Shown: positions 35,850 through 53,342 of the stretch, one piece after another | Layout: each line of letters starts with the position of its first letter | How positions within the stretch are numbered: position 1 is the first letter of the stretch | Assembly: GCA_907165135.1 (NCBI GenBank) | Contig: OU015569.1 | Location: 11,780,001 to 11,844,000, forward strand | Direction: 5' to 3' | DNA length: 64,000 nucleotides | Origin: Oikopleura dioica | Taxonomy: Eukaryota; Animalia; Chordata | The notes under the pieces: generated by a model | What the model saw: the letters and a program-made list of their open reading frames with translations, nothing else | Databases searched by the model: none | What the model was told of the DNA's origin: nothing | Translations under genes and position numbers: made by a program

Positions 35850-38800
35850 TTATTGCAATTGGGGTTTAGCTTGATTTTTGATTTTTCTATAAACGTCAAG
35901 TAGTTGGGCAGTGAATAGCGCGTGCGTTGAGTCTAGTTTGTCCAGCAAGCCGCGTTGAAACCATTTTGGAATTGTCAGCTGAACAATTGTTGAGTTTTCA
36001 AAAGGATTGATTTGACGTACCTTAGCGTGCTTGAAGCCTAGCTGCTTGATAATCGAGTCTACGCCTGGGCACTCGAGCACCGTGTGTTTGTACATGAAGC
36101 GAGTCAGCGGGTCCAGCTTCCACGTCCTGCACATGTACGCTCGCGGATCCGTCGAATTTCCTAGTTCCTCGTCGTCCCCATCTCCCAGCTCTAATTCATT
36201 GTTTGTCAATAATTACAGAAAGGCAAAGAATACTACCTTCGTTGGAAAGAACGGACTTGTGTTCTCGAATGTACTCCCTCACGAAGTTTGTCAAAAAGAT
36301 GATCTCGTTTGTGCTCATCGTTACCTGAAATAAAAAGTTGAAATGATAGTCGCAAAAATATTAAATACCTTGAGCGGTTGATCATGAAATTCAGCCACAA
36401 AGACACAGCTGACTTTTGATTCTTCCGGGAAAGCAGGGAGCTTCAGTGGCTGAATCTGCTCCGTTTTGAGCGTCAATTCGGTTTGCGGCAAAGCAAAAAT
36501 GACATGAACGTTTTCACGACTCTTTTCTGGCTCGGCCTCGTTGATCCCAGGAACGGAGTAGTTGATCCAGTCGCGGACGTCGGCTTGTGCACCAGGGCGA
36601 CGGGCTTTGTTGCGAGAAACGTGCAACACGAAGGCGCCGAGCTTGTCGGTTTCGAAGTTGGGAACGCGTTCGATAGCACGGCCAAGGTTGAAAATGAACG
36701 TCTAAAAATGAAATTGAACATCAAGAATGAAAATGGCAATTATGAAATAAAGAAGCAAGCAATTGAAAATTACCTGGAAAATGAAAATATTAAGACGATC
36801 TTGGGCATCATCTTCTGGCGCGGAGTAAACATCGCTGGAGAAAGAAATATCTGGCAAATGAACGGAAAAGACGACCCAGTGATCGGCTGATCGGAAATCC
36901 CCGTCGAAGCAGACAATTGACAGTTCCTGACCGCGGAGGCGAGACTCGCCGCCGAGCTGATATGAAGCAACCGGGTGGCGATTAAAGATCGGAGGCCAGT
37001 GGCGCTGGTACTTGTCGTCGTTCGACTTTTCCACAGGGCCGCGGCGTTTTTCTTCGTAATTTGAGCTGTGAGCGAACATGCTCCGGAAGGCCTCGCTGCC
37101 CGTGTTGATCTGCTGCTTGACGAAGTCCTTGACTTTGCGCCCGCCTTGGACGAGATTCTTCGAAGTCGACTTGCAAAGAAGAAGATCGAACTCGCCCCAG
37201 CGCATGTCGATGTTCGCCTTCGCCCGCGGAGGACGCTCGTCCAACAAGCTCTCGTCGATGACGAGCAGTTGTGCATCGCTCAGCTTCGAAAGTAGAATTA
37301 CTGTCGAGTGGTATTCCAATCGCAGGCTCACTTCATCCAGCGAGACCTAAAGAGAATACGATTATTTTTCGAAGCTAGTCAAGGGGGCTATCAGTAAAAT
37401 CTGGCCTTCTTCCAACCCTAACCCAAATCCTTACCCCTAACCGAAATCATAAAGAGTTGACAAAGATTTACCTTCATTTCATGAGCTGAATCTTGAGTGC
37501 TTCGTTCTCGCCACAAGCAAGCACCATTAAATCCACTCATCGAAATCACTCCTCCTAGGAGTCCTGATCGCGACTCGATCTTCGTCTTTGCAAGAGAAAC
37601 CAAATTCTTGATGTCATTTTTTCTACTGCTTCTCATGTCAAAAGCACCATGATATGCGAGCTGCTCCGTCACCCAAACCGTCTTGCCGAGAACGTTTCCG
37701 ATGTTCATATCGACTCGTAGCTCTCGGAGAACTGTGGAAACCCTGACTGCAGTTTCCCAGTTTTCGTTGTTATGATTCGGCTGGACGGGAGCAGCTTCGT
37801 TTGTCGGCTTTGCGCGGCTACTTTCACCGAGGAAAAGGCGTCTCGCGATGGATCTGTTGTACCAGGCTTTTGGAAAGCCGAGGATTTCTGACAGACGTCT
37901 CATGTCGTAGTTGATATTTGCCTGGCCAATGTCGGAGATGACAGAAATTGTGAGGAGCTTTTCGGAGACGTGCTGTCTCAAAATGTTGATTGAAATGCCT
38001 TCGAAATTCAAGTGGAAACATCCTTTTGACGAGTTTTCGTAAGGATGGTTCACACGGAGAGCGAAATCAGACAGTTGAATCGCCAAATTCAATCCGGACT
38101 TCTTCGCGTCAGCCGACGGCGCTGACGAGAAGACCATGTTTGTCAGCGGTACTCGGAGCGTGCACTCGACCTTTGCTTTAGGTTGACAAGAGAACAGGAC
38201 GGTCGAGGGCTTCACTTTGGCGTGGACGACGACGTCGACGGGGAAAGACTGGACTGAACTTTGCTCGAAGTTGTGATCGGCGCCGCTTCGTAGATCGATT
38301 TGATCCGGGTCTTCCGGCTCCTTGCCAGTGTAGACTTCGTTCTCGTCCAGAATGTCTAAAGTTTGACTGAGATATTCGAGGAACAAGGGCGAAATGCTCA
38401 TCTCTTTGGGCATGGAGCCGATAACGACGTTTGAGTAAAGCTTCGCGCGGCGATGAGTTTCCCCGCTTCCATGCGACATGTAGTTCAAATCGACGTCCAA
38501 TGCAGGAAGAAGAAAAGTTGTAACGCTAGAGTCAGTCGAGTTCATCGCCGAATTTCGCTTTCGCTCGCTTTCGAGCGCAAAGTGATCGAGTTTCTTGGAG
38601 CTTCCACCTGGGACACCTCCCAAGACGTCGACTGGATAGCATTCCAGTTTTCCTGTTTTGATCGTGATCGTCGCATTCAAAATCAGCTCGATTTCTCCCT
38701 CGCCACTGTTGCTTGAATTGCCTCCTTGAGTTTTTCCTTGATTTTGACCATTTCCGCCATTTTCTGGCTCTGGTCGCCGCTTGAGTAGAATGTACTCTTT

Positions 38801-41800
38801 CTTATATTCCTTCTCGATCTCCCTCAGCGCTTCTTCCTCGTCTCTGATGATGCTTTTCGTCGCGCCGAGTTGCTTCAAATCCTCCAATGTCTTCGTTCCA
38901 GTGTTGTACTTATCCCGCAGTTCTTTAAGTCGCGCTTTCGATCCTTCTGAAACTGCTGCTTCGTCGGAAAACGTTGTCAGCGTTTTTCCCAGGCGAGAGA
39001 AGAGCGTTCCGATTTGAGTGTCGAACTTGCCATCCAATCCCATCATGTTCCAACTGATCATTAAATTCCAAACTCCGGTAACGCTCGAATTCGATGACAA
39101 ATTCGAATCCGAGTGCTCCGTGCCCGAAACGATTTCGATTCCGCCTTCTTTCACTTCACAGCAATTCATCTTTAGTTCACGTGGTTGTCCTTCCCTATCG
39201 AAGAGCAACTCAAAACCTGTGAATTTGCCCTTGAAAGCGGACAAATCGCCGACAGTTCCGCAAACATTTACGTGAGAAATGGTGAGGACGAGGACGTGGC
39301 TTGACCGTGTCACTTCATGTTTCATGTCGATTAGCGGCATTTTCACTTTAAAGTCGTTAACTGTCAAGTTAATGAAGAGTTTCGAAGGCTCCTGGGGCGT
39401 GTTTTTGCTGCTTCCTCCTTTTGTCGGGTGAAGAGGGTTGCCCCCTTGAGCCGGATCAATCTGTCCCTGAACACCACGATTTCGCATCGCGGAAATGCCA
39501 CTTTGACCTTGAGCCTTTTCAATTTCTTCCTTCCAGACGTTATAGGACGAGCGATAGTTCAAATAGACTAGAATGGCGCGATCGATCGCATTTGCATGGA
39601 TAAAGACGACCGGGCTCTTGAGCGTCACGAGGAGCACATCTTCTGCGCTTTCGTTCGTGTTGTGAATGTTCACTCGCGCGTCGAAGGAAGCCATCTTCTT
39701 TTCCTGGCAAATTAGGGCTAGTTTGAGCTCCACGTCGCCGTTGATGATGATTTTGTCGGCCTGGGAAGTAAGGAAGTTGTAGGTAACTGGCGACTTGGTT
39801 CCTTCATCCTCGAAGTTTGCGATAAATGAGTTTATTACAGGTACATCGAGCTTGACAATGTTCCCGGTTGGTGTAGAAGCCTCGACGTTTATTCCTTTCA
39901 TCTGGATTTTGAAGGAGTATTTCATCGGTGTCACGGGCGTCAGTTCTTTAGGCGTCGATGCAGAAGTTGCAGCTGTTTGAAATCCAAGAGCAGGGAACGG
40001 CTCCTCTGTTTTCAACTTGTTGAGAATATCAGTCACTTCCGACTTCAACTCTTCAACGCAGGAGAGAAGAATGTTTAGCAAATCCGTCGTCAAATCCTGT
40101 TGGAATTTTTCGATTTCGCAGCGCCCGCTAAGTAGCTCGGCCCCATCCTTTTTCAGGTCTAGATCGACCTCGATCGAGGGGAAGACGATCTTTTGCGAGA
40201 TCTTTTCTTCGTGATCGGCCGTTCGAAATTCGCCCAAAATGCTGATCTTGTGTTCTGTTACTTTCAAGCTGGAGGTCATCAGGACTTTTTGGCTAGAGCC
40301 GAGAGTTGTCTTTACAGAACTAGGATTCCATTCACCATTCGACGTTATTGGGCCGACTTCGTAATTAGCAGTGACCGACTGTAGCAGATTGATTTTCATG
40401 AAAAAGCCTTTGAAGACGACCTTGAAGATCAACGGCATCGTGGAGGATCGCGAGCTTTTTGAGCTCTCCGACCCGAGTTGAGGACTGAGTTGTCCGTCCG
40501 TAACTGGCAATCCTGCTGGAGGGAGCTTAGGAGCATCGAAATCCGGCGTGTCGATGATGATGCCAGGCTGGTAGCTTTCAAAGTCTTTCAATTGGTGAAA
40601 CAGCTTCTGTGAGGTCCTTGAAAAGATATGATGAAGTTCTTGGACACGAAGGGGCAGTTTCAGATTCACTTTTCCGATTTCAGCGATCAGGTCGATCACC
40701 TTCTGACTTTCGCGCGTGTTTGGATGCGCGTTGAATAACGACCGATCAACAGTAACTTGGAGCACGGCTTGAGTACTTTGTGCTTCGATGAAATCGATGT
40801 TGATCGACTTTAGTTTCACTTTTACTGAAAGTTTGAGCGATGCGAGATTCGGAGAAATGCGCAGTGGTTGGACCCGATTATCCGCGTCGAAGGTCACTTC
40901 TTGAACGTATCTCAGCTGGTCGAGATTGACGGAACCGTCGAGCGCGTTGAGCTGAATCGATAGACTCAATCCACCAACATCGGCGGAGAGACGCGTCGTG
41001 CGAATTGAAAACGAAACTTCCACCCTGAGAGTCGTCTCCGTCTCCAAATTGGAAGCTGAGCTATCTGAGTGGAATTTACCACCAGGGCGGTGAAGTTCCG
41101 TTGCTTGAATCACTGTTGATCGGGCGAGGCGAGAAATGGGAGTTTCGTTTTCGATCTCCATCGTTTCTACAGTGCTTTCTTGAGTTGCTACGTTCAATCC
41201 ATCGTTGTAAACGAACACCAGCCAGACTGGATCTTCGTCTCTGCTCGACAATTCACCGTCGTTGAGCTGCTCTTGGTGGCTGATTTCCTGGTGGATGTCG
41301 ATTGAGTCTTCGGATGAGCAAAGCGAGCTCGGATAATTCAAATGCTCATCGTTACATCTTTCTTCCATTCGTCCAATGCGATGGTCCATCTTCGCCCGGG
41401 CGATATTGTCCACGACTCCGTTCACTTGAACGATTAAACGGACGAGGCTCATGTCCAACCGCTGCGAAATTTCGGAAATATCAAGCGAAACAGAAACCTT
41501 TGGGGGGACATTTTGCAGCTTTTCGAGTTCCGTGTTGGGAATGTCCAGGCAGCCGTTGACTTTGATTTGGTCGAGCTTGAGCACCGGTTGGTTTTCGAGC
41601 GCAAAGGCACGCACCCGCCGCGTTCGGCGCTTTTCGGTTTCTTTGATAAAGACCTGGAAACTGGACAAATTGGCATTGATCTTGCACTGGCTTATTTCTT
41701 CTTTATAAAGACTGGTGAATGTTTCCGGATCGTTGTCAACTGGTACATGGCAGTAATCGAGAATCGACTTCATTTTGATGATGGACTCGACCCCTTCTCG

Positions 41801-44800
41801 GGGCAACGAGTAGTTGTGATTAAATGTTTGCACCTTGGTCGGTCTCCGCGATGCTTCGGTGTGAATATTGTCTACTGGCAGTTTCGGCATTCTGAGAACA
41901 TCAAACATATTGTCCGTGTACTCGGGCCAGTGTTTCTCCTTTCCGTAGCTTTCCATCTCCTTTTGCCACTTTTGACAGACGATGAGAAGGGCTCGTTTGA
42001 GAGTTTGGGACTTCGGGATTTTCAAGTTGGTATAGCTCGTAGTCGGTTGATTCGGTTCCAGGAAGTACTCAGCCTCGTCTGACCCGTCGCGGAAGATCTC
42101 TTTCACGAATTCTGGCAACGAGAGTAGATAGACGTTCGAGGCCGCAGCGCAGAAGGCTACGTTCTTCCGCAACGCTTTGGCAGTTCTCGTCAGGGGTAGT
42201 GTCCCGCCGCCGGTGACGGAGAGATCGTTAATGTTGTCGATCAGTTTTCGGATGTTGAAGTTGAAGAGACTTTCTTTGTCCGTTTTCTCCGTCATGGCAA
42301 CTCGGTGCGCTAGCGGAGCAACAATCACCTTGCATCGTTGGTTTATGACGTCTTCTCTGATGTGCGCGATTTCGTTCGAAATATCTTCCAAGCGTTCTAC
42401 CCAGCTCGAGGCCCCATAAGAAGCGGTCGATAGAAGACTCCACTGGCGCGTGGCACGCGAGAGACTCGACGGAGCAGCTGCCAAGAACCAGATCTTTTCG
42501 ATGTTCATGTTCATCTGCGCTTTTGAAATAAGCCTTTCTCCTTTTAGTTTGATCCCGTCGATGCCTGCTTCTGCCATGATCCATCCCCAATCGTTTTCGC
42601 ATTTGAAGGCGACGGAGACGGACTTTGGCGATCTCTGCGATGTTTCTTGGAGGCAAACGACCGTTGTTCTTTCCGGTTCCTGCCCGTCAATAGAGTTTGC
42701 TCGCAGCTGCAAGTGAAGTCTTCTGAAGGAGGCTGAAGCGATGATGTTTTTGTTTTCTTGCTTCAAATTGGCGGAAACGTCGACTTGCTCCATCCACGCG
42801 ACGAGAAGTGTGGCACACGGCATCGGCTTCTGAAACGAAGTGCCGCTTTCGTTGATGTTTTGGGCCACTTGGCAGAGACCGATTTTGATGTTTTGAATTT
42901 TGAAGTTGAGTTGAAGGGGGCTCTTTCGTTCCTCCGTAATATCCTCATCGTCGTTCTTAATGTGTTCGTCGACGACCTTGGCCATTAGAATCGACGTAAT
43001 CGTTGAATAGTGAAGTCGCTGAACGACCGATTCGATGTCTTCTAGGGCATGGCGAACTGCGGCCAAGCAAAGCGGCGTCGCAAAGACGTCCACAGCTGAG
43101 GTGTTCTCCACGGAATTGAGAGTTACATTGAGCTTCGTTGCGTTCCTGTCCGTGACGGATTGTTTCTGAGAAACGCGCGGAGATTCTGGCTCAAAGTCTA
43201 CGCCGCGTTTTGCATCTCTGATCACTATTCCGCTGCAGACTCGATTGCTACACTCTTTGATCGTCATATCCTCGTCCAAAATCGGCAGCACTTTGTCATA
43301 CATTTCATGATCGATCTCATCCGCTTGAATCGGAGACGCAATCGTGTGAAGAGGAAGATTAGAAGGACGTTGACGAGTTCGCGATTCATTTTTAATAGAA
43401 GCTCTGGAGCTTCTTGATTCTGTTCTGAGGCGATGTTGGCTGACTCGTGAACTGCCCTGGCTTGATTCTTTTGACATTCGCTTTGAGCGGGAGCGGCGGG
43501 AGCCTCGCGAGTCATTCCGTTCTAGGGTCCTGTTGGAGATAATGCTCTCGTTGAAACTGGTGTTTCTCGAGTGCGAATGTGGAGACAACGAAGTGTGCTG
43601 TTTGTTCAACAGTTGATTCTCCATCGTAGTCTCTCCAGTTTCGACATCATCTTCTTCCCCGTCTTCCCCTTCATCTGCCGAGTAGAACTGATCGATGGTA
43701 TCGCTTGAGCCGAAGCTCGAGCTCAAGGCAGAATGAAATCCTTCAGTGACGGAGCTGGCCGTAGTTTTAGCACTTTTGAAGCTCTTGACTGAGATTTTAT
43801 CCAGAGCGCTTGTCGATTCTGCGTTTTCCTTGAGACTCATTTCATTCGAAATCAATCCGGGTTGCCCATAAATGCCATCTTGACTGATCGGTGTTCGTGC
43901 TTTTAGAATCCCTCCAGGAAGGCGAGAAGCGGATTCCGCTCTTGCTCGATCCAGCGAGCCATCGCGAGAACTTTTTGAGCTCATTCGTCCGGTTCCGCCG
44001 AAGATTGAGTTCGACTTGAGCTTCGTGGAGTCGCCCGATTCAGTCGGCTGAAGGAGCCCGTACGAGCTTCGGAAAGACGAGCGAGCAAAAGGCCCATCGG
44101 GGCTGATGCTTCCAGTGCTCTGCGCGATAGAAGTAGCTGTCAGGCGGCTGCAGAACGGGCGCTTTTGGAACTTCTGCTCCAGATCGACCAAAACCGTGTC
44201 TTGGATCAAGCTCTTTCCACGCTGGACGACACCGTCGAGCATCACTTCTGCTGGCGAGTTTTCATCAGGATCGAACCAGGAACAACCCCACGAGTCTTTT
44301 AGCGATGTTCGATAAACCGCTTCTCTGGAATTACTGTCCCAGAGGAAATCCAAGCGTTTTCTCTTCCGGTCGTGTTTTCTCAGCCACGTGTCTTGTTCGT
44401 GCAGCTCACTTTCCACAATGCCCAGTTCGACGGCGATTTCTGACTTGGGAAGCTGAAGCAGTCCTGCTTGCAGCCACTGATTCTCGTAGCAAAGGGCCAC
44501 TTGGACTGAAATGACACCCAAGTTTGCGCAGACAAAGCCGCCACGATCGTCGCAGCGAAGATTGTTGATCGAAACGGACGACTTAGCAACGGAGGCATTT
44601 ACTTTGGCACTTTTGCAGACGGCTGTTACGTCGAGCCCGAGCCAGGAGACTTTTGTCTTTTCGTATTTCATTTCATCGCCGATTTTCAGTTCATAGGGTG
44701 CCTTGAGCTCATACGCCTTGTCCGCAACGCAGAGAATCACTTGATCGAGCCACAGTCCCAAATTCACGACGTCTTCGATTTTAAGCTCTCCGGAGAGTTT

Positions 44801-47800
44801 TCCGATTTCAATTTCTTGCATCCACGCGTATTCCAAAGTCGGCGCAGTGAGAGGCAATCCTTCAGCGGAGAAAAACGCGCTCCCTCGATATTGCAAGCCC
44901 GAGAGGTGGAGATCCGCATATTTGTGGCCGAAAGTTACTTCGATTTCTGACAGGGTCAGTTGCATCCGTGTGCTGGTGTAGTGCTTGTCAAGCTCAAAGA
45001 TCAAAAAGTCGAGTTTCACCAAAGGACCGCCGTTTTGAAGACTCGAGTTTGGTGGCAGAGGCAGACGCGCAGTTAAATCCCGTAGTTCGACTTCGACGAC
45101 GACGGAAAAGGCACGGAAGGGACGGATCCAATCCTTCTCGTTCTGCTTGAAGTCTGTTACCGTATTGGTGTTGATTTCAACGATCTCGCATTCGTTACTA
45201 GACTCCTTGACGAAAGGCGTCACTTGATCCCAGAAACCGAGGACGTTTTCTTTAACATTGAGCAGGACTGGAATGAGCGTTCCAAACGCGACGGGTTCAA
45301 TTTGCTCGGCGAGTATTTTCGCTCTAAGGAAGTCAGCTTCGAGCAGCATCGGATCGTACTGGACCTTGACCTTCTTTCTATACTTGGGATGGGGCATGTA
45401 GTCGCAGTTCCATTTGTACTCGAAGGTTAAATTCAGCTTGTTGAAGGAACCGAGTTCGACGAAGCCATTTTCCGCCTTTGTAATTTCGCGCCAGTAATCG
45501 GCGTCGTAGACGAGCACGCGATTCTGGCCCAAAGAGCGTTGGAAACTTTCTTGAGCCTTGTGCGATGCTTTTTGAATGTGATGCGCGGGAGCACAGGGAG
45601 GGACGAAAATCGCAATAGACCCGTGTCGTGTCACGATGTTAAATACGATTTCTACGCTGGCTGGTGCGAAAGTGTCGAACGGAAGACTGTTCAAAGGGTT
45701 TTAGCTTTTTCATCAACAAGAATAAAGTCAAGCTAGCAAGAACGACTGCAAAAGTCTCTAAGAATATGCCTAAAGGAGAACCCATTCCTGAAGTCAACGT
45801 CGAGTTCTGGAACAGCGATCGCGAGTAAGCTATTCTTACATGTGCTATTTGCACTCTCCGGAACAGGATTCTGGCAGTCGACGTAGTTGTATTCGTTGAC
45901 TGGAAGGAGCACTTCGAGATGGTGGAATCGAATTTTGAATTCGTAGGTGACTGGAACGTAGTGGACAATATCGAGCGGTTGATCAGGACTCCAGTCGTTG
46001 ATGAATTCGGTCATGAACTCCTTGATGGGCCAGACAAAGAGCAACGAGCTCTCGCGGACGTTGACTTCGAAGGACCAAATTTGGTGACGGTTGAAAAACG
46101 TCGGGGTCAGCGTATCAAGCGTTACGGACAGTTCTTTGGCGTGGACGAAGCGTTTCAAGTGCTCTGATTGAAGAGTGATCTTTGCGTCCACCAGATGGAT
46201 CTTCAAAGGGGATACACATCAAGGGAATATAGATTAATGATTGAGCTATATTCTGATTATTAAAAATAAGGACGTGACTATGTTAAATCTTGAAGAAAAT
46301 GGCAATGCCAATAATGTCTACCCTCTTCCCTTTACAGGCATGTGGAACTGCATTCCACTCTCATCAACTTCTTTTGGAAAATAAGGCGAAATCGAGCTCA
46401 TAGAACTTCCACTTCCTGCTTGCACTTGTAATTGCTTTGTGTGGCCATCGCTGCCGAGGAATTCCAGATTCAGCTTGTTGGTCAAGTTTTTTGCTTTTGA
46501 GGCTTTCTGCCGCTTGTCCAGCCGCGTGGAGAACTCGAAGTCGAAACGAAATTGGCGAAGAGAAGGGCTCGTTGGTGGCTGCCACTCTTTTTTCTCAATT
46601 GGAAAGAAAAAACGCCAGATTTTCTCGCGCTGGCGATCGCACCAAGGACCCCAATTGATTGTCGAGTTGTTGGCGAGCTGCAGCGAAACACCCCATTCTG
46701 GGTCTTCGGAGACGAGCGGGTGCGAATCCGAATGCACTTCGCTGGGCAACAAGTCCCAGTAGTAATTCACTGAGGCTTTTCGAGAGACGCAGACCGAGTA
46801 AACGCCTCTTTCGCGATACGAGTTACGATGTTGGTGATCGCTTTGATCAGAAAACACGCGCTGGCCAGTCCCGGGAATCGGCTTGTCATCCTTGTCTGGT
46901 CCTTCATAGCCACTGGAAGGGACGAACATCACTTCGAAATTACGGGCGTCGCCTTCGAAGCTCTGGCGCAGTTTCTTGTCCGGTTTTCGGTACTGGAACA
47001 TTCCTTCCGACAAAGAGCAGACGATCGAGTACGGCAGCGTTTTGTTTCCCATGATGATTCGGCCGTAGAGAACGTTGATTTCAAAGTAGGGACACAAGTC
47101 GTAAATTTCATCCCACCACTTCGAAACTGCCTGCTCAGGATTCGAATTATCCCGCTTCTCCCCGTGAACCGATTCATTGTAGAAGTAATTCCAGTCGCAG
47201 CCGCTGAGTTGAATGTAAACTCGAGAAGTCTTCTTGTTTCGTCGGATGCGTCCTTTTTCCTTGACGTTTTGGCTCGTTTCAGGCGCTAAATTTTACGTTT
47301 TTGCTTATGAAATCGGTGATGAAGAATTTATTTAGACATTTCGAGACATTTTTAGATATCTACGAACATCTTAAGAGACTTTTTAGACATCTTTAGGCAT
47401 TCATAGACAATTTTAGACTCAAGTCGTAAATGAAAAGAAAAATTTGAAAACCTATAATGGGATGAGGCAACCACCAACGAAATATCAAGAAGCCATCGTT
47501 GACCGTGACTGTATAATCGGAAGTGCCGTATCGTAAATTGCGAAACATGATTTTCCCGCCCAAGAGGTTGATTGAGAAACTGCCGAAAGAAATGGACTGT
47601 CCTTTGAAGGCGAAGTACTAAAAAAGCGAATCAGTTCGAAATTCCTCCGAAACGAAATCGAAGAAAAGGTCTTTACTTCGCCATAAAAAAGTGCGAAGGC
47701 AGTAAACTTGAAAAGAAGCTCTCACCTTTGAAATGAACCATCCGAAGAGGCGCGAGTTGTAGAAAGTCAGGTAGATGATCCACAAGCCGGAAACGAACGT

Positions 47801-47880
47801 CACGATGTAGAACTTGGCCCATTCCGACCAGTCCTTCATCGGGTTAACCCAGTCGTACCAAGAAGGCACATCGCTGCTGT
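35850..47880 (-). CDS. BLTP1: Bridge-like lipid transfer protein 1 (KIAA1109/Tweek); start codon not resolved
   Basis: WIIYLTFYNSR N-terminal TM region, WGPWCDRQREKIWRFFFP, AFPKAWYNRSIARRLFLG, C-terminal LGFKHA..TIPKWFQRG. One ~8.2-kb uninterrupted exon. Confidence 0.92.
47333..47420. repeat. Degenerate ~10-bp minisatellite (TTTAGACATC-like) in BLTP1 intron
   Basis: About eight tandem variants of TTTAGACAT. Confidence 0.7.
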
Positions 47881-49399: not shown

Positions 49400-52300
49400 T
49401 CATTCCACCGGTTGCGCCATCGACTGGCCCATTTGAGGAGCGTGCATGTATTCTCCATTGCCCATATTTTGGTCTGAAAACATCGCTTAGATGAATGATA
49501 ATAATAATTGCTTTTTAGGTTCTCTTTAGTAGACTAATCAGAGTGAAGCCCTTATATTTTCTGCTCCGAGAAAGGTTAAGACCCTTTTTCACTGGCTAGA
49601 CTTGACTTTGGAAAGAAAATTTAAGGGTGTCACTTTGAAAAGCGATTTCAAAATGCGAATCTTTATGAAAAAGTCCTTGTCTCTTACCGTCGTCAAAAGC
49701 AAAGGGATCATGCTGTTGCTCTTGCTCAAAGCGTTCGGACTTTGCATCGCCTGGATGCACTTGCCGCTGTTGGTGGTGGTGCATTTGCTGCTGCTCTTGG
49801 TGCTGGCCGGGGTGCTGCTCCATTTGGTGCGGGTCGACTTGGTGCATTTCGTGCTCCGCCATTTGCCCTTGATGCTCTTCAATGGGCACTCCTTGCTGCC
49901 CGTCCAGGTGTTGCACGCGCTGGACCATTACCGGCGAACCGTTCTGCCCGATCACGTGACCGTCCTCCTGAAAAACAAAAATATCTAAGCGAGCCCAAAA
50001 TTTTTCAGCATTTGCTCATTAGAATGAGAACGTGGCGAGATTTAAACGTGCTGGAGAGAGAGCTTGGCTGGTGGCGCTGGTGTGGCACCACCACCACTGC
50101 CTGCACCTTTCTTTTTCACCAGCACGTTTGAAAACCCCTTTTTCAACCCTTCTTTTATGTGACTGACCGTGTAGACTAGACCGCCCTGGGAATGACTGCT
50201 TTCCATGTCGTCCATTTCGGAGTCGTAATCTGGATCGAAGATTTGGTTTCCGTCCTCCTGAAAAATGTATTTTTAGCGCTAGAAAGTTCGTGTTCGATTT
50301 TACGTCGATTCTGTAGCGACCGGAGCGGTGCGTCTTTTGATGCTGCATGAGCGACCATCTGTCGTGGAAGACCTCTTCGCAGTAGCGACATTGCATGGGA
50401 ATCTAAACAAAAACAGCGATAAAAACAAAAAACAGCAACGGCGGCATTACCTCTTGATATGAATGTTGTTTGCGCAAGTGAACATTCAAGTCGGACTTTC
50501 GCCCCAACATCGTGTGGCAAATTTCGCCTAAAATCGCGAAATTGAAATCAACAACGAATATTTTTTCGTTTCTTACATTCGAACTTTGGAGCGGTCTTCG
50601 TGTGCTGCTGCATGACGTGCATTTTCAGACTGCCGTGCTGTGTAAATCTCGCCTTGCAGTGCGGACACTCGTAAGGCTTTTCGCCCGTGTGCGAGAACTT
50701 GTGTCGCTTGAGATGGAAGCTGTCTGCAAACGCTTTGCCGCAGATGTCGCAGCTAAAAGGCCGCTCGCCCGTGTGAGATCTAAATATTTTTATACAAGGG
50801 AGTTCTCTTTGACTTTATATATTTTAAGTTTTCATGGCTCCCAATCTTTATTTTATCAAGAAAAAGTTGTCATCATCAGGATTCGAACCTGGCGCCCTTT
50901 GAAGACTACTTATTCTTATTATGTTAGTTTTTAATTAACGATATTTTCTAATAAAAATAATTATGAAGTTTTGGACTGACCTAAAATGGCGACGAAGTTT
51001 TGAAATTTCGACAGAAGCGTATTCGCACAAAGTGCATTTAAACGGTTTTTCGTGGGTGTGTTTGTACCGCCTGTGTCTCGTCAATTCACCAGATGTTACA
51101 AAGGCCATCTCGCAGTTCGCCTCTGGGCACTAGAAAGATATTCAATGAGCACTAGAAGTTGAAGTGTGTTTACCTTGTAAGGCTTGACCCCTAAATGCGT
51201 GTTGATGTGATTCCGCAGCAACGTGTTTGTACGGAAGCGCGCGCGCTAGAAAATGGTCGGGTTAGAAATCGAAATATATCAGAAATTAACCGAGTAAAGC
51301 CCTTAATTTGAGGCAGTGGTAGAGCTATTGTCAATTTAGCCTGAACTAGTGAATAATTGTAGATTTGGTAGATTGACACTAACCCTAACCTCGCCTGAAA
51401 ATAAGGGTGTCACTGTCTTATTTTCGAGGAATCACAGAATGTAGCGCCTCCTTTGTCAATCTTTTATCCTGGGAGGACTTACCATAAATGACATTTGTAG
51501 GGTCTTTCATCGGTGTGTATCTTCATGTGGCGTATCAAATTGGAATGTCTGAAATTAGAATTTCAGCAATTAGTTATTACGAAACCAGAAGTACCTGTGG
51601 GAATAGAAGGCGCATTCTGAGCACTGGTAGATTTTGCGTTTTTCGCCGTTGGCGCCGACCTGAATCGTTCCAGGATACTTCGTCCTTTGCGTAGTTTGCT
51701 GCGACTTTTTGTAGTGATTTTCGATCTTGGGCTCGTTCTGGATCGGCACGTCTAAATCAATCCTTTTATTTTTGCGTTCTTTTCAACTTTCAACGTCAAT
51801 TCTCCTGGGAGAAGTGAACTCTTTCTCATTTTTCTTCCTAAGTAAACTCGAAAGAGCTACTTTCTTTAAATTTTCATTTCAACTAGCGTAGTGACATCCT
51901 TATATTTTCTGCTAAAATTAAAGCTAAGGCATTAGATACGGCCTCAACACTCTATAGCAGAAAATAAGGGTGTCACTTCGTTAAATATCGTAGAAAATAA
52001 TCATTTTTACAAAGACATATTGTGATGACACCCTTCATTTTCTGCTAAAAGTAAGGCTTAGACCCCTATCTTGTACCTTCACTTTATTTCCCGCAGAAAA
52101 CTAACGGTGTCACCACGTAAAATCTCTAAAAAGAAAACTGACCTTGGTAGTCATAAATATTTTCTTGCTGCTTAATTCCTCCATTATCCGTCGTCTCTTC
52201 GTAGACAACGTCTTGGTTGGTGTAATTTCGCAGAGGGACGCCCTTATCTGCGTCGTGATACTCCGGCTCAGCCTGGTAGTCGTACGGATCCGCGGGCTGC

Positions 52301-53342
52301 TGATCCCCGTAGCCAGGCACCTGTTGGTTTTCCTCGTTTCGCAGCTGAACAATTTTGTTTACTTATTAATCCCTCCTCACTGGCTCGCTGAGTCAAGTTC
52401 AAAATTTTAGTTTCGCTGCAAAATAGGGATAAAAGAAATTAAAATTACGTAAGCCCTCGTTCATCCTTTTATTTCCTGCATATGTACCCTTGTTCATCCT
52501 TCAGCCACATAGCTTTACCTGTGAATGATAGAATCTACCCGCCGCTAAATTTCTAGATTTTTCATAAAAGAAAGGCTACGTGGCCGAAGGATGAACAAGG
52601 GGACACACGCAGGAAGTTAAAGGATAAATAAGGGTGGCCCCATTTTGATTATGTTAACTCTTCAGGAAAAATCTACTGGAAAATAGACGTGTTTGTTATT
52701 GATAAATAGTCACTTAGTGGTTACTTATATCAGAGGGGATACAGATTAAGTATATTCACAAGAGCTTCAAAATATCGTATTTTAAGGGTGTCCCTTCTTA
52801 AAATTAAGAAAACAAGTTTCACTGCGGTATTTGCTCCGTCAAGAGAGCAAAGTGCGAGCGCGAAGATGGTGGCGCCAGGGACAAGCCTAGAGGTCGCGCT
52901 CAACACCTTTTTTTCAGAAGAAGAAAATAATTCAAAGTCTGAAAATCAAGAAGAAATTTACCTGCATGGCTTCGTCGATGGAAATTTGATTTTCGTGGTC
53001 GTTTTCGTCTTTTGAAACGAACATGATTCCGGCCTGCTCGGCGGCTGCTTGCAGAATCGTCGGATCCGTCACCGGGATGCCGTTGCTGTCCACCGCGATT
53101 AGCCGCACTGGCCGTGCCTGTAATACAAGTTAGAATGCTCATTTTATTATTCAATTAGTCACCTCAGTTCCGCCTATAGTCATTTGAACGTCCGCTCCCT
53201 GGATCGTCTCTGGCAGTTCTCCTTCTCGGACCATTCTTTCGTGCTCTTCCGGAGCGACGGCGATGAACTGGACGGTGGTGGTGTTTCCATCCTCCTCCTC
53301 CATAATCGGCTCCTCTTCATACTCCTGCTGCTGCTGACTCAT
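49400..53342 (-). CDS. CTCF: CTCF orthologue with zinc fingers 1-8 only; one 1-nt frame break in ZF2
   Basis: [87 protein letters not shown] and [21 protein letters not shown] align finger by finger with CTCF ZF1-8. Confidence 0.92.
52454..52634. mobile_element. Unclassified MITE-like element with ~63-bp inverted arms (CTCF intron)
   Basis: CCCTCGTTCATCCTTTTA...CCCTTGTTCATCCTTCAGCCACATAGC is mirrored by GCTACGTGGCCGAAGGATGAACAAGGGG...AAGGG; no TSD seen. Confidence 0.75.

Follow-up and report, generated by a model that had tools for sequence, protein, structure and literature searches.

The question raised by this locus is whether a CTCF reduced to eight zinc fingers (ZF), with a variant of the motif that binds cohesin, is the true CTCF of Oikopleura dioica, and whether its shortness is a peculiarity of this animal. 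The stretch analysed (the window) is 64,000 nucleotides long, positions 11,780,001 to 11,844,000 of the forward strand of contig OU015569.1 in assembly GCA_907165135.1, and the gene lies on its minus strand. O. dioica CTCF has been known since at least 2017 and has been profiled by chromatin immunoprecipitation on arrays (ChIP-chip; PMC5240408). Between nine and eleven CTCF fingers are reported in all species studied other than the sea squirt (bioRxiv 10.64898/2026.10.19.759930), and the cohesin-binding YxF motif is described as conserved across bilaterians (bioRxiv 10.64898/2026.10.19.760054; bioRxiv 10.64898/2026.10.19.759930). Our analysis indicates that the locus is very probably the single full-length CTCF orthologue of O. 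dioica, with fingers 1-8, and that ZF9-11 were lost at the tunicate stem.

Results

Gene structure and transcript support

The coding region has 13 exons on the minus strand (53342-49400) and encodes about 602 amino acids, and all its introns are short and of the GT-AG type.

49400-53342, minus strand: whole CTCF coding region, with exons read from the sequence, tiled on a sister transcript and accompanied by RNA junctions
53342-53163, 53117-52962, 52344-52143, 51751-51595, 51548-51483, 51245-51174, 51129-50981, minus strand: exons 1-7
50779-50577, 50527-50451, 50402-50304, 50257-50168, 49967-49688, 49473-49400, minus strand: exons 8-13
53163-53342, minus strand: exon 1, whose start codon (53342-53340) is preceded at a distance of seven codons by an in-frame TGA; it holds a tunicate-wide N-terminal module
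49400-49402, minus strand: TGA stop, kept in the sister lineage, where reads and transcript continue into an unrelated, finger-free 3' untranslated region (3'UTR)

The transcript is L018, a spliced contig from a sister Oikopleura lineage with a complete coding sequence of 594 codons, which was obtained by searching metagenome contigs with the ZF3-4 exon. The 13 exons of the window map consecutively onto its positions 477-2270, end to end, with no gaps and no surplus bases, and the comparison placed the acceptor of exon 3 at 52344, 24 nucleotides upstream of its first-look position. The first-pass annotation of the window had called for a full-length cDNA; L018 covers all 13 exons and comes from the sister lineage rather than from that of the window. 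The RNA runs likewise belong to the sister lineage (reads 85-95% alike, synonymous sites saturated). Their reads show exon junctions 4-5, 6-7, 10-11 and 12-13; exon 10, which holds ZF8 and ends at 50304, is spliced straight to the acidic exon in 73-77 reads per run (X5, X6), and the stop is retained and followed by unrelated 3'UTR. The same eight-finger protein, ending in AQPVE, was found in contigs L016 and L017 and in the Logan protein P0003, and transcript contigs of at least three O. dioica-type lineages share one stop.

Between the window and L018, the proportion of synonymous differences (pS) is 0.76-0.81, with 0.76 in the tail. That of nonsynonymous differences (pN) is lowest in the fingers (0.027), followed by the N-terminus (0.041) and the tail (0.122), and protein identity is 94-99% outside the tail. 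Judged from these rates, the N-terminus (strongly so), the fingers and also the tail are under purifying selection. Exons were searched singly, the joined protein (with X at a frame break treated below) was used in local alignment, and the full-length database search was made with L018. Pfam recognised generic C2H2 models in the finger exons only, and no match was found in the N-terminus or tail.

Zinc fingers and identity

Exons 4-10 encode eight C2H2 fingers, several of them split by introns. The reference called mouse CTCF here is a metagenome contig, L025, whose 736-amino-acid protein has the MEGEAV start, mouse length and 11 fingers, and which we took for rodent. The same scan also returned L030, a contig with a non-human N-terminus, and the vertebrate genomic pieces L031 and L032; of these four, L025 alone entered the comparisons. 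Contact residues are those at helix positions -1, +2, +3 and +6.

51515-51623, minus strand: ZF1, split by intron 4, contacts RSNR as in mouse
51195-51493, minus strand: ZF2, split by intron 5, out of frame as assembled
51058-51129, minus strand: ZF3, C-x4-C as in all tunicate-type sequences, contacts TGER as in mouse
50773-51036, minus strand: ZF4, split by intron 7, contacts ESKR as in mouse
50689-50751, minus strand: ZF5, contacts DFHR where mouse has DYKR (Y to F at +2, K to H at +3), in all tunicate-type CTCFs
50602-50667, minus strand: ZF6, contacts QGSM against mouse QGTM, a conservative difference
50463-50577, minus strand: ZF7, split by intron 8, contacts RSDV as in mouse
50328-50390, minus strand: ZF8, the last finger, contacts DWSQ against mouse EYAQ, with HQKTH ending at 50328

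The contacts thus equal those of the mouse-length protein in ZF1, 2, 3, 4 and 7 (ZF2 read from the sister lineage). The first-pass annotation had proposed that the fingers reading the core motif are kept, and this is borne out by the identity of ZF3, ZF4 and ZF7, the conservative ZF6 and only two changes in ZF5. It had also correctly read DSFHLKR for DTYKLKR in ZF5 (ADSFHLKRH in the window, RDTYKLKRH in the mouse-length contig), a replacement common to all tunicate-type CTCFs. Because ZF1-4 and ZF7 carry the same DNA-contact residues as in mouse, ZF6 differs conservatively and ZF5 is changed at +2 and +3, the protein would be expected to recognise a core motif resembling that of CTCF but shifted in its middle triplet; it should also be without the upstream-motif and RNA-binding module.

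In the PDB, the ZF3-4 exon found human CTCF 325-369 at the top, with 81.8 bits for the domain, above all other zinc-finger proteins. The ZF5-6 exon covered human CTCF 372-437 end to end, and multi-finger proteins ranked higher by summed scores only. The protein-database search with L018 returned tunicate proteins first, including a Phallusia 'CCCTC-binding factor'. The vertebrate 'transcriptional repressor CTCF' came next, about 64% identical across the fingers, and the scores of some frog multi-finger proteins fell between the two groups. There is one full-length CTCF gene in the genome: the linker/ZF1 exon is single copy, and beyond this gene the ZF3-4 exon matches just two loci, each a partial copy, so that no 11-finger paralogue was detected.

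Loss of ZF9-11 and its age

The frame continues past ZF8 through RSGRYRID into acidic and Q/H-rich exons and stops at 49400, as the first-pass annotation had described; the sequence, L018 and the RNA junctions agree on this.

50304-50327, minus strand: RSGRYRID after ZF8, aligning with KNEKRFKCD, the start of vertebrate ZF9
49403-50257, minus strand: tail exons 11-13, acidic and Q/H-rich, the last exon ending ...MAQPVE; 155 residues, no finger

The Ciona counterpart of RSGRYRID is RSCGQRFRSD (R.CG.RFR.D in ascidians), and tunicates keep an R-[FY]-R-x-D stretch after ZF8 that aligns with vertebrate RFKCD, so RSGRYRID is possibly what remains of the beginning of ZF9. A representative library of 1.84 billion proteins gave the Q/H-rich exon a single match, the 96-amino-acid fragment P0001 (72% identity), whose 1.1-kb metagenome contig (L013) comes from another lineage and has ZF8 followed by the acidic exon and then the Q/H exon, as in the window; it yielded no full-length protein.

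Fingers 9-11 were absent wherever they were sought. The six-frame scan found no ZF9-11 in the window and no C2H2 finger on the minus strand between the CTCF stop and the downstream gene BLTP1, the nearest other minus-strand finger belonging to a separate gene at about 21-24 kb. The TBLASTN search with ZF9-11 that had been proposed at first was made with the L025 fingers; its best genome match (39.6 bits, 41% identity) is at the level of this gene's own ZF5-6 and not of CTCF grade, and within the window the query matched known finger exons only. The 1.1 kb of L018 3'UTR contains no finger either.

Search with L018 fetched 21 tunicate-type CTCFs, including those of Ciona intestinalis, Phallusia mammillata, Clavelina lepadiformis and Styela clava. 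Eight fingers are found in all 21, and eleven in hagfish (P0083); for Ciona the eight fingers have been confirmed by rapid amplification of cDNA 3' ends (October 2026 preprint, bioRxiv 10.64898/2026.10.19.759930). All tunicate-type CTCFs also share the C-x4-C of ZF3, the DSFHLKRH change in ZF5, FHDRW in ZF8 and two N-terminal modules, one of which includes TTTVQFIAV. As all ascidian-type and Oikopleura-type CTCFs retrieved share eight fingers, comparison dates the loss of ZF9-11, and with it the ZF5 change, to the tunicate stem; it is no recent adaptation of Oikopleura. Counted by fingers, the Oikopleura gene falls short of eleven tandem C2H2 fingers, but the same eight in all tunicate-type CTCFs imply that eleven fingers define the vertebrate form and not orthology.

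The two N-terminal modules, in exons 1-2 (53163-53342 and 52962-53117), are kept from Oikopleura to Ciona, Phallusia, Clavelina and Styela. BLASTP of the N-terminus against that of mouse-length CTCF gave nothing significant (best E 0.14), and with this the idea that the TTTVQFIAV module corresponds to the vertebrate PDS5A motif at 95-116 was dropped.

Three points weigh against this account of the gene. Most of the 21 sequences are metatranscriptome or Logan contigs, and 'ascidian-type', 'Oikopleura-type' and 'appendicularian' are groupings by shared residues. The gene as assembled is frameshifted in ZF2, at the exon 5/6 junction, with a stop 17 codons past the junction. Finally, strong ligands of the cohesin CES follow the consensus [Y/F]-[D/E]-F-[D/E]2-4 (PMC11789155), from which the motif in the window departs by Tyr at position 3 and by the lack of an acidic run (it is followed by Q-D-V-P-I).

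Cohesin-binding motif and basic linker

Two YDY motifs precede the fingers.

52147-52155, minus strand: second YDY, ENIYDYQ/DVPIQ, by alignment homologous in position to VYDF of vertebrates and VYEF of ascidians
52276-52284, minus strand: first YDY, within PADPYDYQ and 90 residues ahead of ZF1; kept in the O. dioica complex, YSY in the relative P0005
51630-51674, minus strand: linker of 15 residues before ZF1, with three lysines or arginines (K/R) against 7-8 in ascidian-type, mouse and hagfish sequences
SVYEFQ[ED]PPTG: motif context, ascidian type
SVYDFQEVPI: motif context, Oikopleura-type relative P0005
NIYDYQDVPI: motif context, O. dioica complex
MYEYTDVPI: motif context, P0004

The coordinates given with NIYDYQ in the first-pass annotation are exactly those of its YDY, and its likeness in position to the human motif, some 45 residues before ZF1, holds: YDY (52155-52147) stands 47 residues before the first Cys of ZF1, and the motif of the mouse contig 42. 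Position 3 is Tyr in the window, L018, P0002, P0003 and P0004, and Phe in P0005, species B, ascidians, mouse and hagfish. The retention of Phe in ascidian-type sequences and P0005 places the change to Tyr within the Oikopleura branch. All Oikopleura-type sequences have three K/R in the linker, the basic patch being one feature proposed to support loop anchoring (bioRxiv 10.64898/2026.10.19.760054). On this comparison only two features are specific to Oikopleura, the replacement of YxF by YDY or YEY in the O. dioica complex and the weakened basic linker.

The first two positions of the motif do agree with the CES consensus, with an aromatic residue followed by an acidic one (Y-D in the window, Y-E in P0004), and the acidic run is missing from the ascidian motif too (Q-E/D-P-P). 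O. dioica STAG retains the equivalents of the pocket residues W334, F367 and F371, and its RAD21 reads TMRSQL, against TIRAQL in human. Complex prediction with a STAG fragment (L044), a RAD21 fragment (L045) and the YDY peptide of L018 scored 0.02 and 0.08 and gave no verdict either way. This motif and the residues on either side of it have stayed frozen although synonymous sites between the lineages are saturated, and such conservation indicates that YDY is still a functional short linear motif. Most likely it would still touch the STAG-RAD21 surface, whose pocket residues are kept, with weak anchoring capacity, which is a guess given the departure from the consensus; weak anchoring would in turn fit a mainly promoter- and enhancer-proximal role of CTCF.

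A rival view of this N-terminal mechanism, and of nothing else in the gene, is that YDY binds cohesin no more, that the two YDY motifs serve another partner and that CTCF here is independent of cohesin. The Phe that enters the second hydrophobic pocket has indeed been replaced in a motif with no acidic run, the basic patch is down to three K/R, and the other YDY, in DPYDYQ, is found only in Oikopleura and is equally conserved. However, Tyr for Phe is a conservative replacement, the STAG pocket residues are kept, and so are the position and flanks of the motif (SV/NI-Y-D/E-F/Y-Q-D/E-VPI) relative to P0005, which bears YDF; we therefore consider cohesin independence a tenable but rather doubtful explanation. 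Its strongest form, that O. dioica is the first chordate with a CTCF uncoupled from cohesin, in which the Phe-to-Tyr change and the lost patch together abolish docking and another partner has taken over the YDY motifs, is a speculation from sequence that we hold to be unlikely.

One-base deficit in exon 6 and partial paralogues

Exons 1-5 end in TG, and one base from exon 6 should complete the second Cys of ZF2.

51233-51245, minus strand: one-base deficit at the start of exon 6 (51245-51174), which has 72 nucleotides in the window and 73 in L018

The window reads TG/C GCG CGC GC- TTC CGT (the slash marking the junction), and L018 TGC GCC CGA GCC TTC CGC (C A R A F R). Non-canonical splicing that would bring ZF2 back into frame was sought, and neither an AG acceptor nor a G-starting donor leaves the frame open while supplying the second Cys. 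As the base is missing from a (CG)n run that precedes TT and the rest of the gene is intact, the deficit is in high probability an error of the assembly consensus.

The alternative is that the deletion is real in this Okinawa-type lineage, and that the canonical CTCF is truncated after ZF1 or present as a null allele, its function being lost, rescued by an unusual splice, or partly assumed by paralogues with ZF3-8. Such paralogues exist as two expressed-looking chimeras, and the missing base is evident both from L018 and from the fact that all orthologues keep C.R.FRT in frame. Against this, the remaining exons are all intact and bounded by canonical splice sites, and the protein has the close identity to L018 outside the tail given above; the (CG)n run with TT is a typical place for consensus errors, no acceptor or donor restores the frame, and the paralogues lack the N-terminus and ZF1-2. 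A genuine deletion is thus improbable, and an assembly error remains our reading of exon 6.

The paralogues lie on contig C5.

C5:5669439-5669582, plus strand: ZF3-8 copy 1 (ZF3-4 exon match), read as L011:3300-4070
C5:5735756-5735899, minus strand: ZF3-8 copy 2 (ZF3-4 exon match), read as L012:5060-4225

They are 66 kb apart in opposite orientation and are DNA-level partial duplicates that retain the parental introns, beginning at the last bases of exon 6 and ending 2-5 codons after ZF8, and both are joined on their upstream side to unrelated open frames, acidic and Ser-rich. The L011 copy is without ZF5, and the intron where it is missing contains telomere-like CCCTAA repeats. Like paralogues of the CTCFL/BORIS type, the copies combine fingers 3-8 of CTCF with an unrelated N-terminal sequence in front of them; they differ in being young partial duplicates with parental introns, without ZF1-2 and in one case without ZF5.

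Neighbouring sequence and motif occurrences

The downstream neighbour is BLTP1 (KIAA1109/Tweek-type), at 37418-47869 on the minus strand with its start near 47869, and it holds an uninterrupted open frame of 2758 codons from 37418 to 45694. The CTCF stop lies 1.5 kb from the start of BLTP1 in the window. The sister CTCF transcript continues for at least 1.1 kb after the stop (L018 2271-3417), which is long for so compact a genome. Several CTCF introns contain, in both orientations, a short repeated element that looks like a miniature transposon family.

52830-52780, 52040-51960, 51420-51395, 49630-49540: examples of the intron element with GTGACACCCTTA(A/T)TTT

The strict core motif CCASYAGRKGGCRSY occurs 36 times in the genome, against once for the reversed control, and this count was not used as binding-site enrichment, as many of the occurrences are pairs at 35-bp spacing. 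Strict CTCF core motifs CCACTAGGTGGCGCT and CCACTAGAGGGCAGT are paired 35 bp apart and clustered on contig C3 at 2.63-2.82 Mb, and these clustered pairs are probably copies of a repeat carrying CTCF-like sites.

Discussion

The closest described counterpart of the gene is the CTCF of Ciona robusta / C. intestinalis (P0011), which likewise has eight fingers, no ZF9-11 and a finger-free acidic tail, together with the ZF3 C-x4-C, ZF5 ADSFHLKRH, ZF8 FHDRW, the two N-terminal modules and the R-F/Y-R-x-D stretch after ZF8. The two differ before the fingers, where Ciona has SVYEF and a patch of seven K/R (KSRDRRKI) and O. dioica has IYDY and three K/R; their tails are unalignable past the first ten residues, and the flanks of ZF5-6 differ (HRMSH/QRGSVKMH in one of the two). 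With vertebrate CTCF (human 7W1M, 5T0U, 8SSS; L025; hagfish P0083) the gene shares identical contact residues in ZF1-4 and ZF7, about 87% identity in ZF3-4 (counted from the PDB alignment) and a Y-D-aromatic motif at a similar distance before ZF1 (47 residues in O. dioica, 42-43 in vertebrates). In contrast, it is without ZF9-11 and the KTYQR motif, has an unrelated C-terminus, carries F/H in place of Y/K at +2/+3 of ZF5, and has YDY for YDF with no acidic run after it and a weak basic patch.

Drosophila CTCF, compared by description, has three basic residues in the linker before ZF1, as O. dioica does, while keeping the F of YxF and more fingers (bioRxiv 10.64898/2026.10.19.760054; for the fingers, bioRxiv 10.64898/2026.10.19.759930). 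Through a YEF motif it binds cohesin without loop anchoring, and it is no prominent loop anchor (bioRxiv 10.64898/2026.10.19.760054).

It had been suggested that the loss of ZF9-11 is a streamlining specific to Oikopleura, which alters loop anchoring and is tied to its fast-rearranging genome. O. dioica does show eight fingers together with a variant cohesin motif, and tunicates as a group are without CTCF-anchored Hi-C loops (bioRxiv 10.64898/2026.10.19.760054). However, both the eight fingers and the altered ZF5 recur in Ciona, Phallusia, Clavelina, Styela and every other tunicate-type sequence; the truncation is therefore older than Oikopleura and cannot account for the peculiarity of its genome, and we regard a lineage-specific loss as highly improbable. 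That the eight-finger form is one isoform or a mis-assembled model, with a ZF9-11 isoform or a separate 11-finger orthologue elsewhere, is hardly credible: nothing positive was found for it beyond the sister-lineage origin of the RNA data, and it is opposed by the negative searches of window and genome, the single-copy linker/ZF1 exon, the tiling of L018, the RNA junctions and the independent transcript contigs that end at the same stop. The gene in the window is thus taken as the orthologue, of which no longer form was found, and neither of the two refutations foreseen in the first-pass annotation, a ZF9-11 isoform or a separate 11-finger orthologue, applies.

An eight-finger CTCF is the tunicate state and no surprise, and the gene takes an ordinary place among the tunicate CTCFs with eight fingers that have recently been described. 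Taken together, the ascidian-type and Oikopleura-type sequences allow both the ZF9-11 loss and the change in ZF5 to be placed at the tunicate stem. An exception to the bilaterian YxF is found in the O. dioica complex, with Y-D/E-Y and a linker of three K/R inside an almost frozen N-terminus. Were the uncoupling from cohesin true, it would provide a natural separation-of-function CTCF, in which DNA reading occurs without loop anchoring. Oikopleura offers a cheap natural test of the importance of the F and the basic patch for engaging cohesin in animals other than vertebrates.

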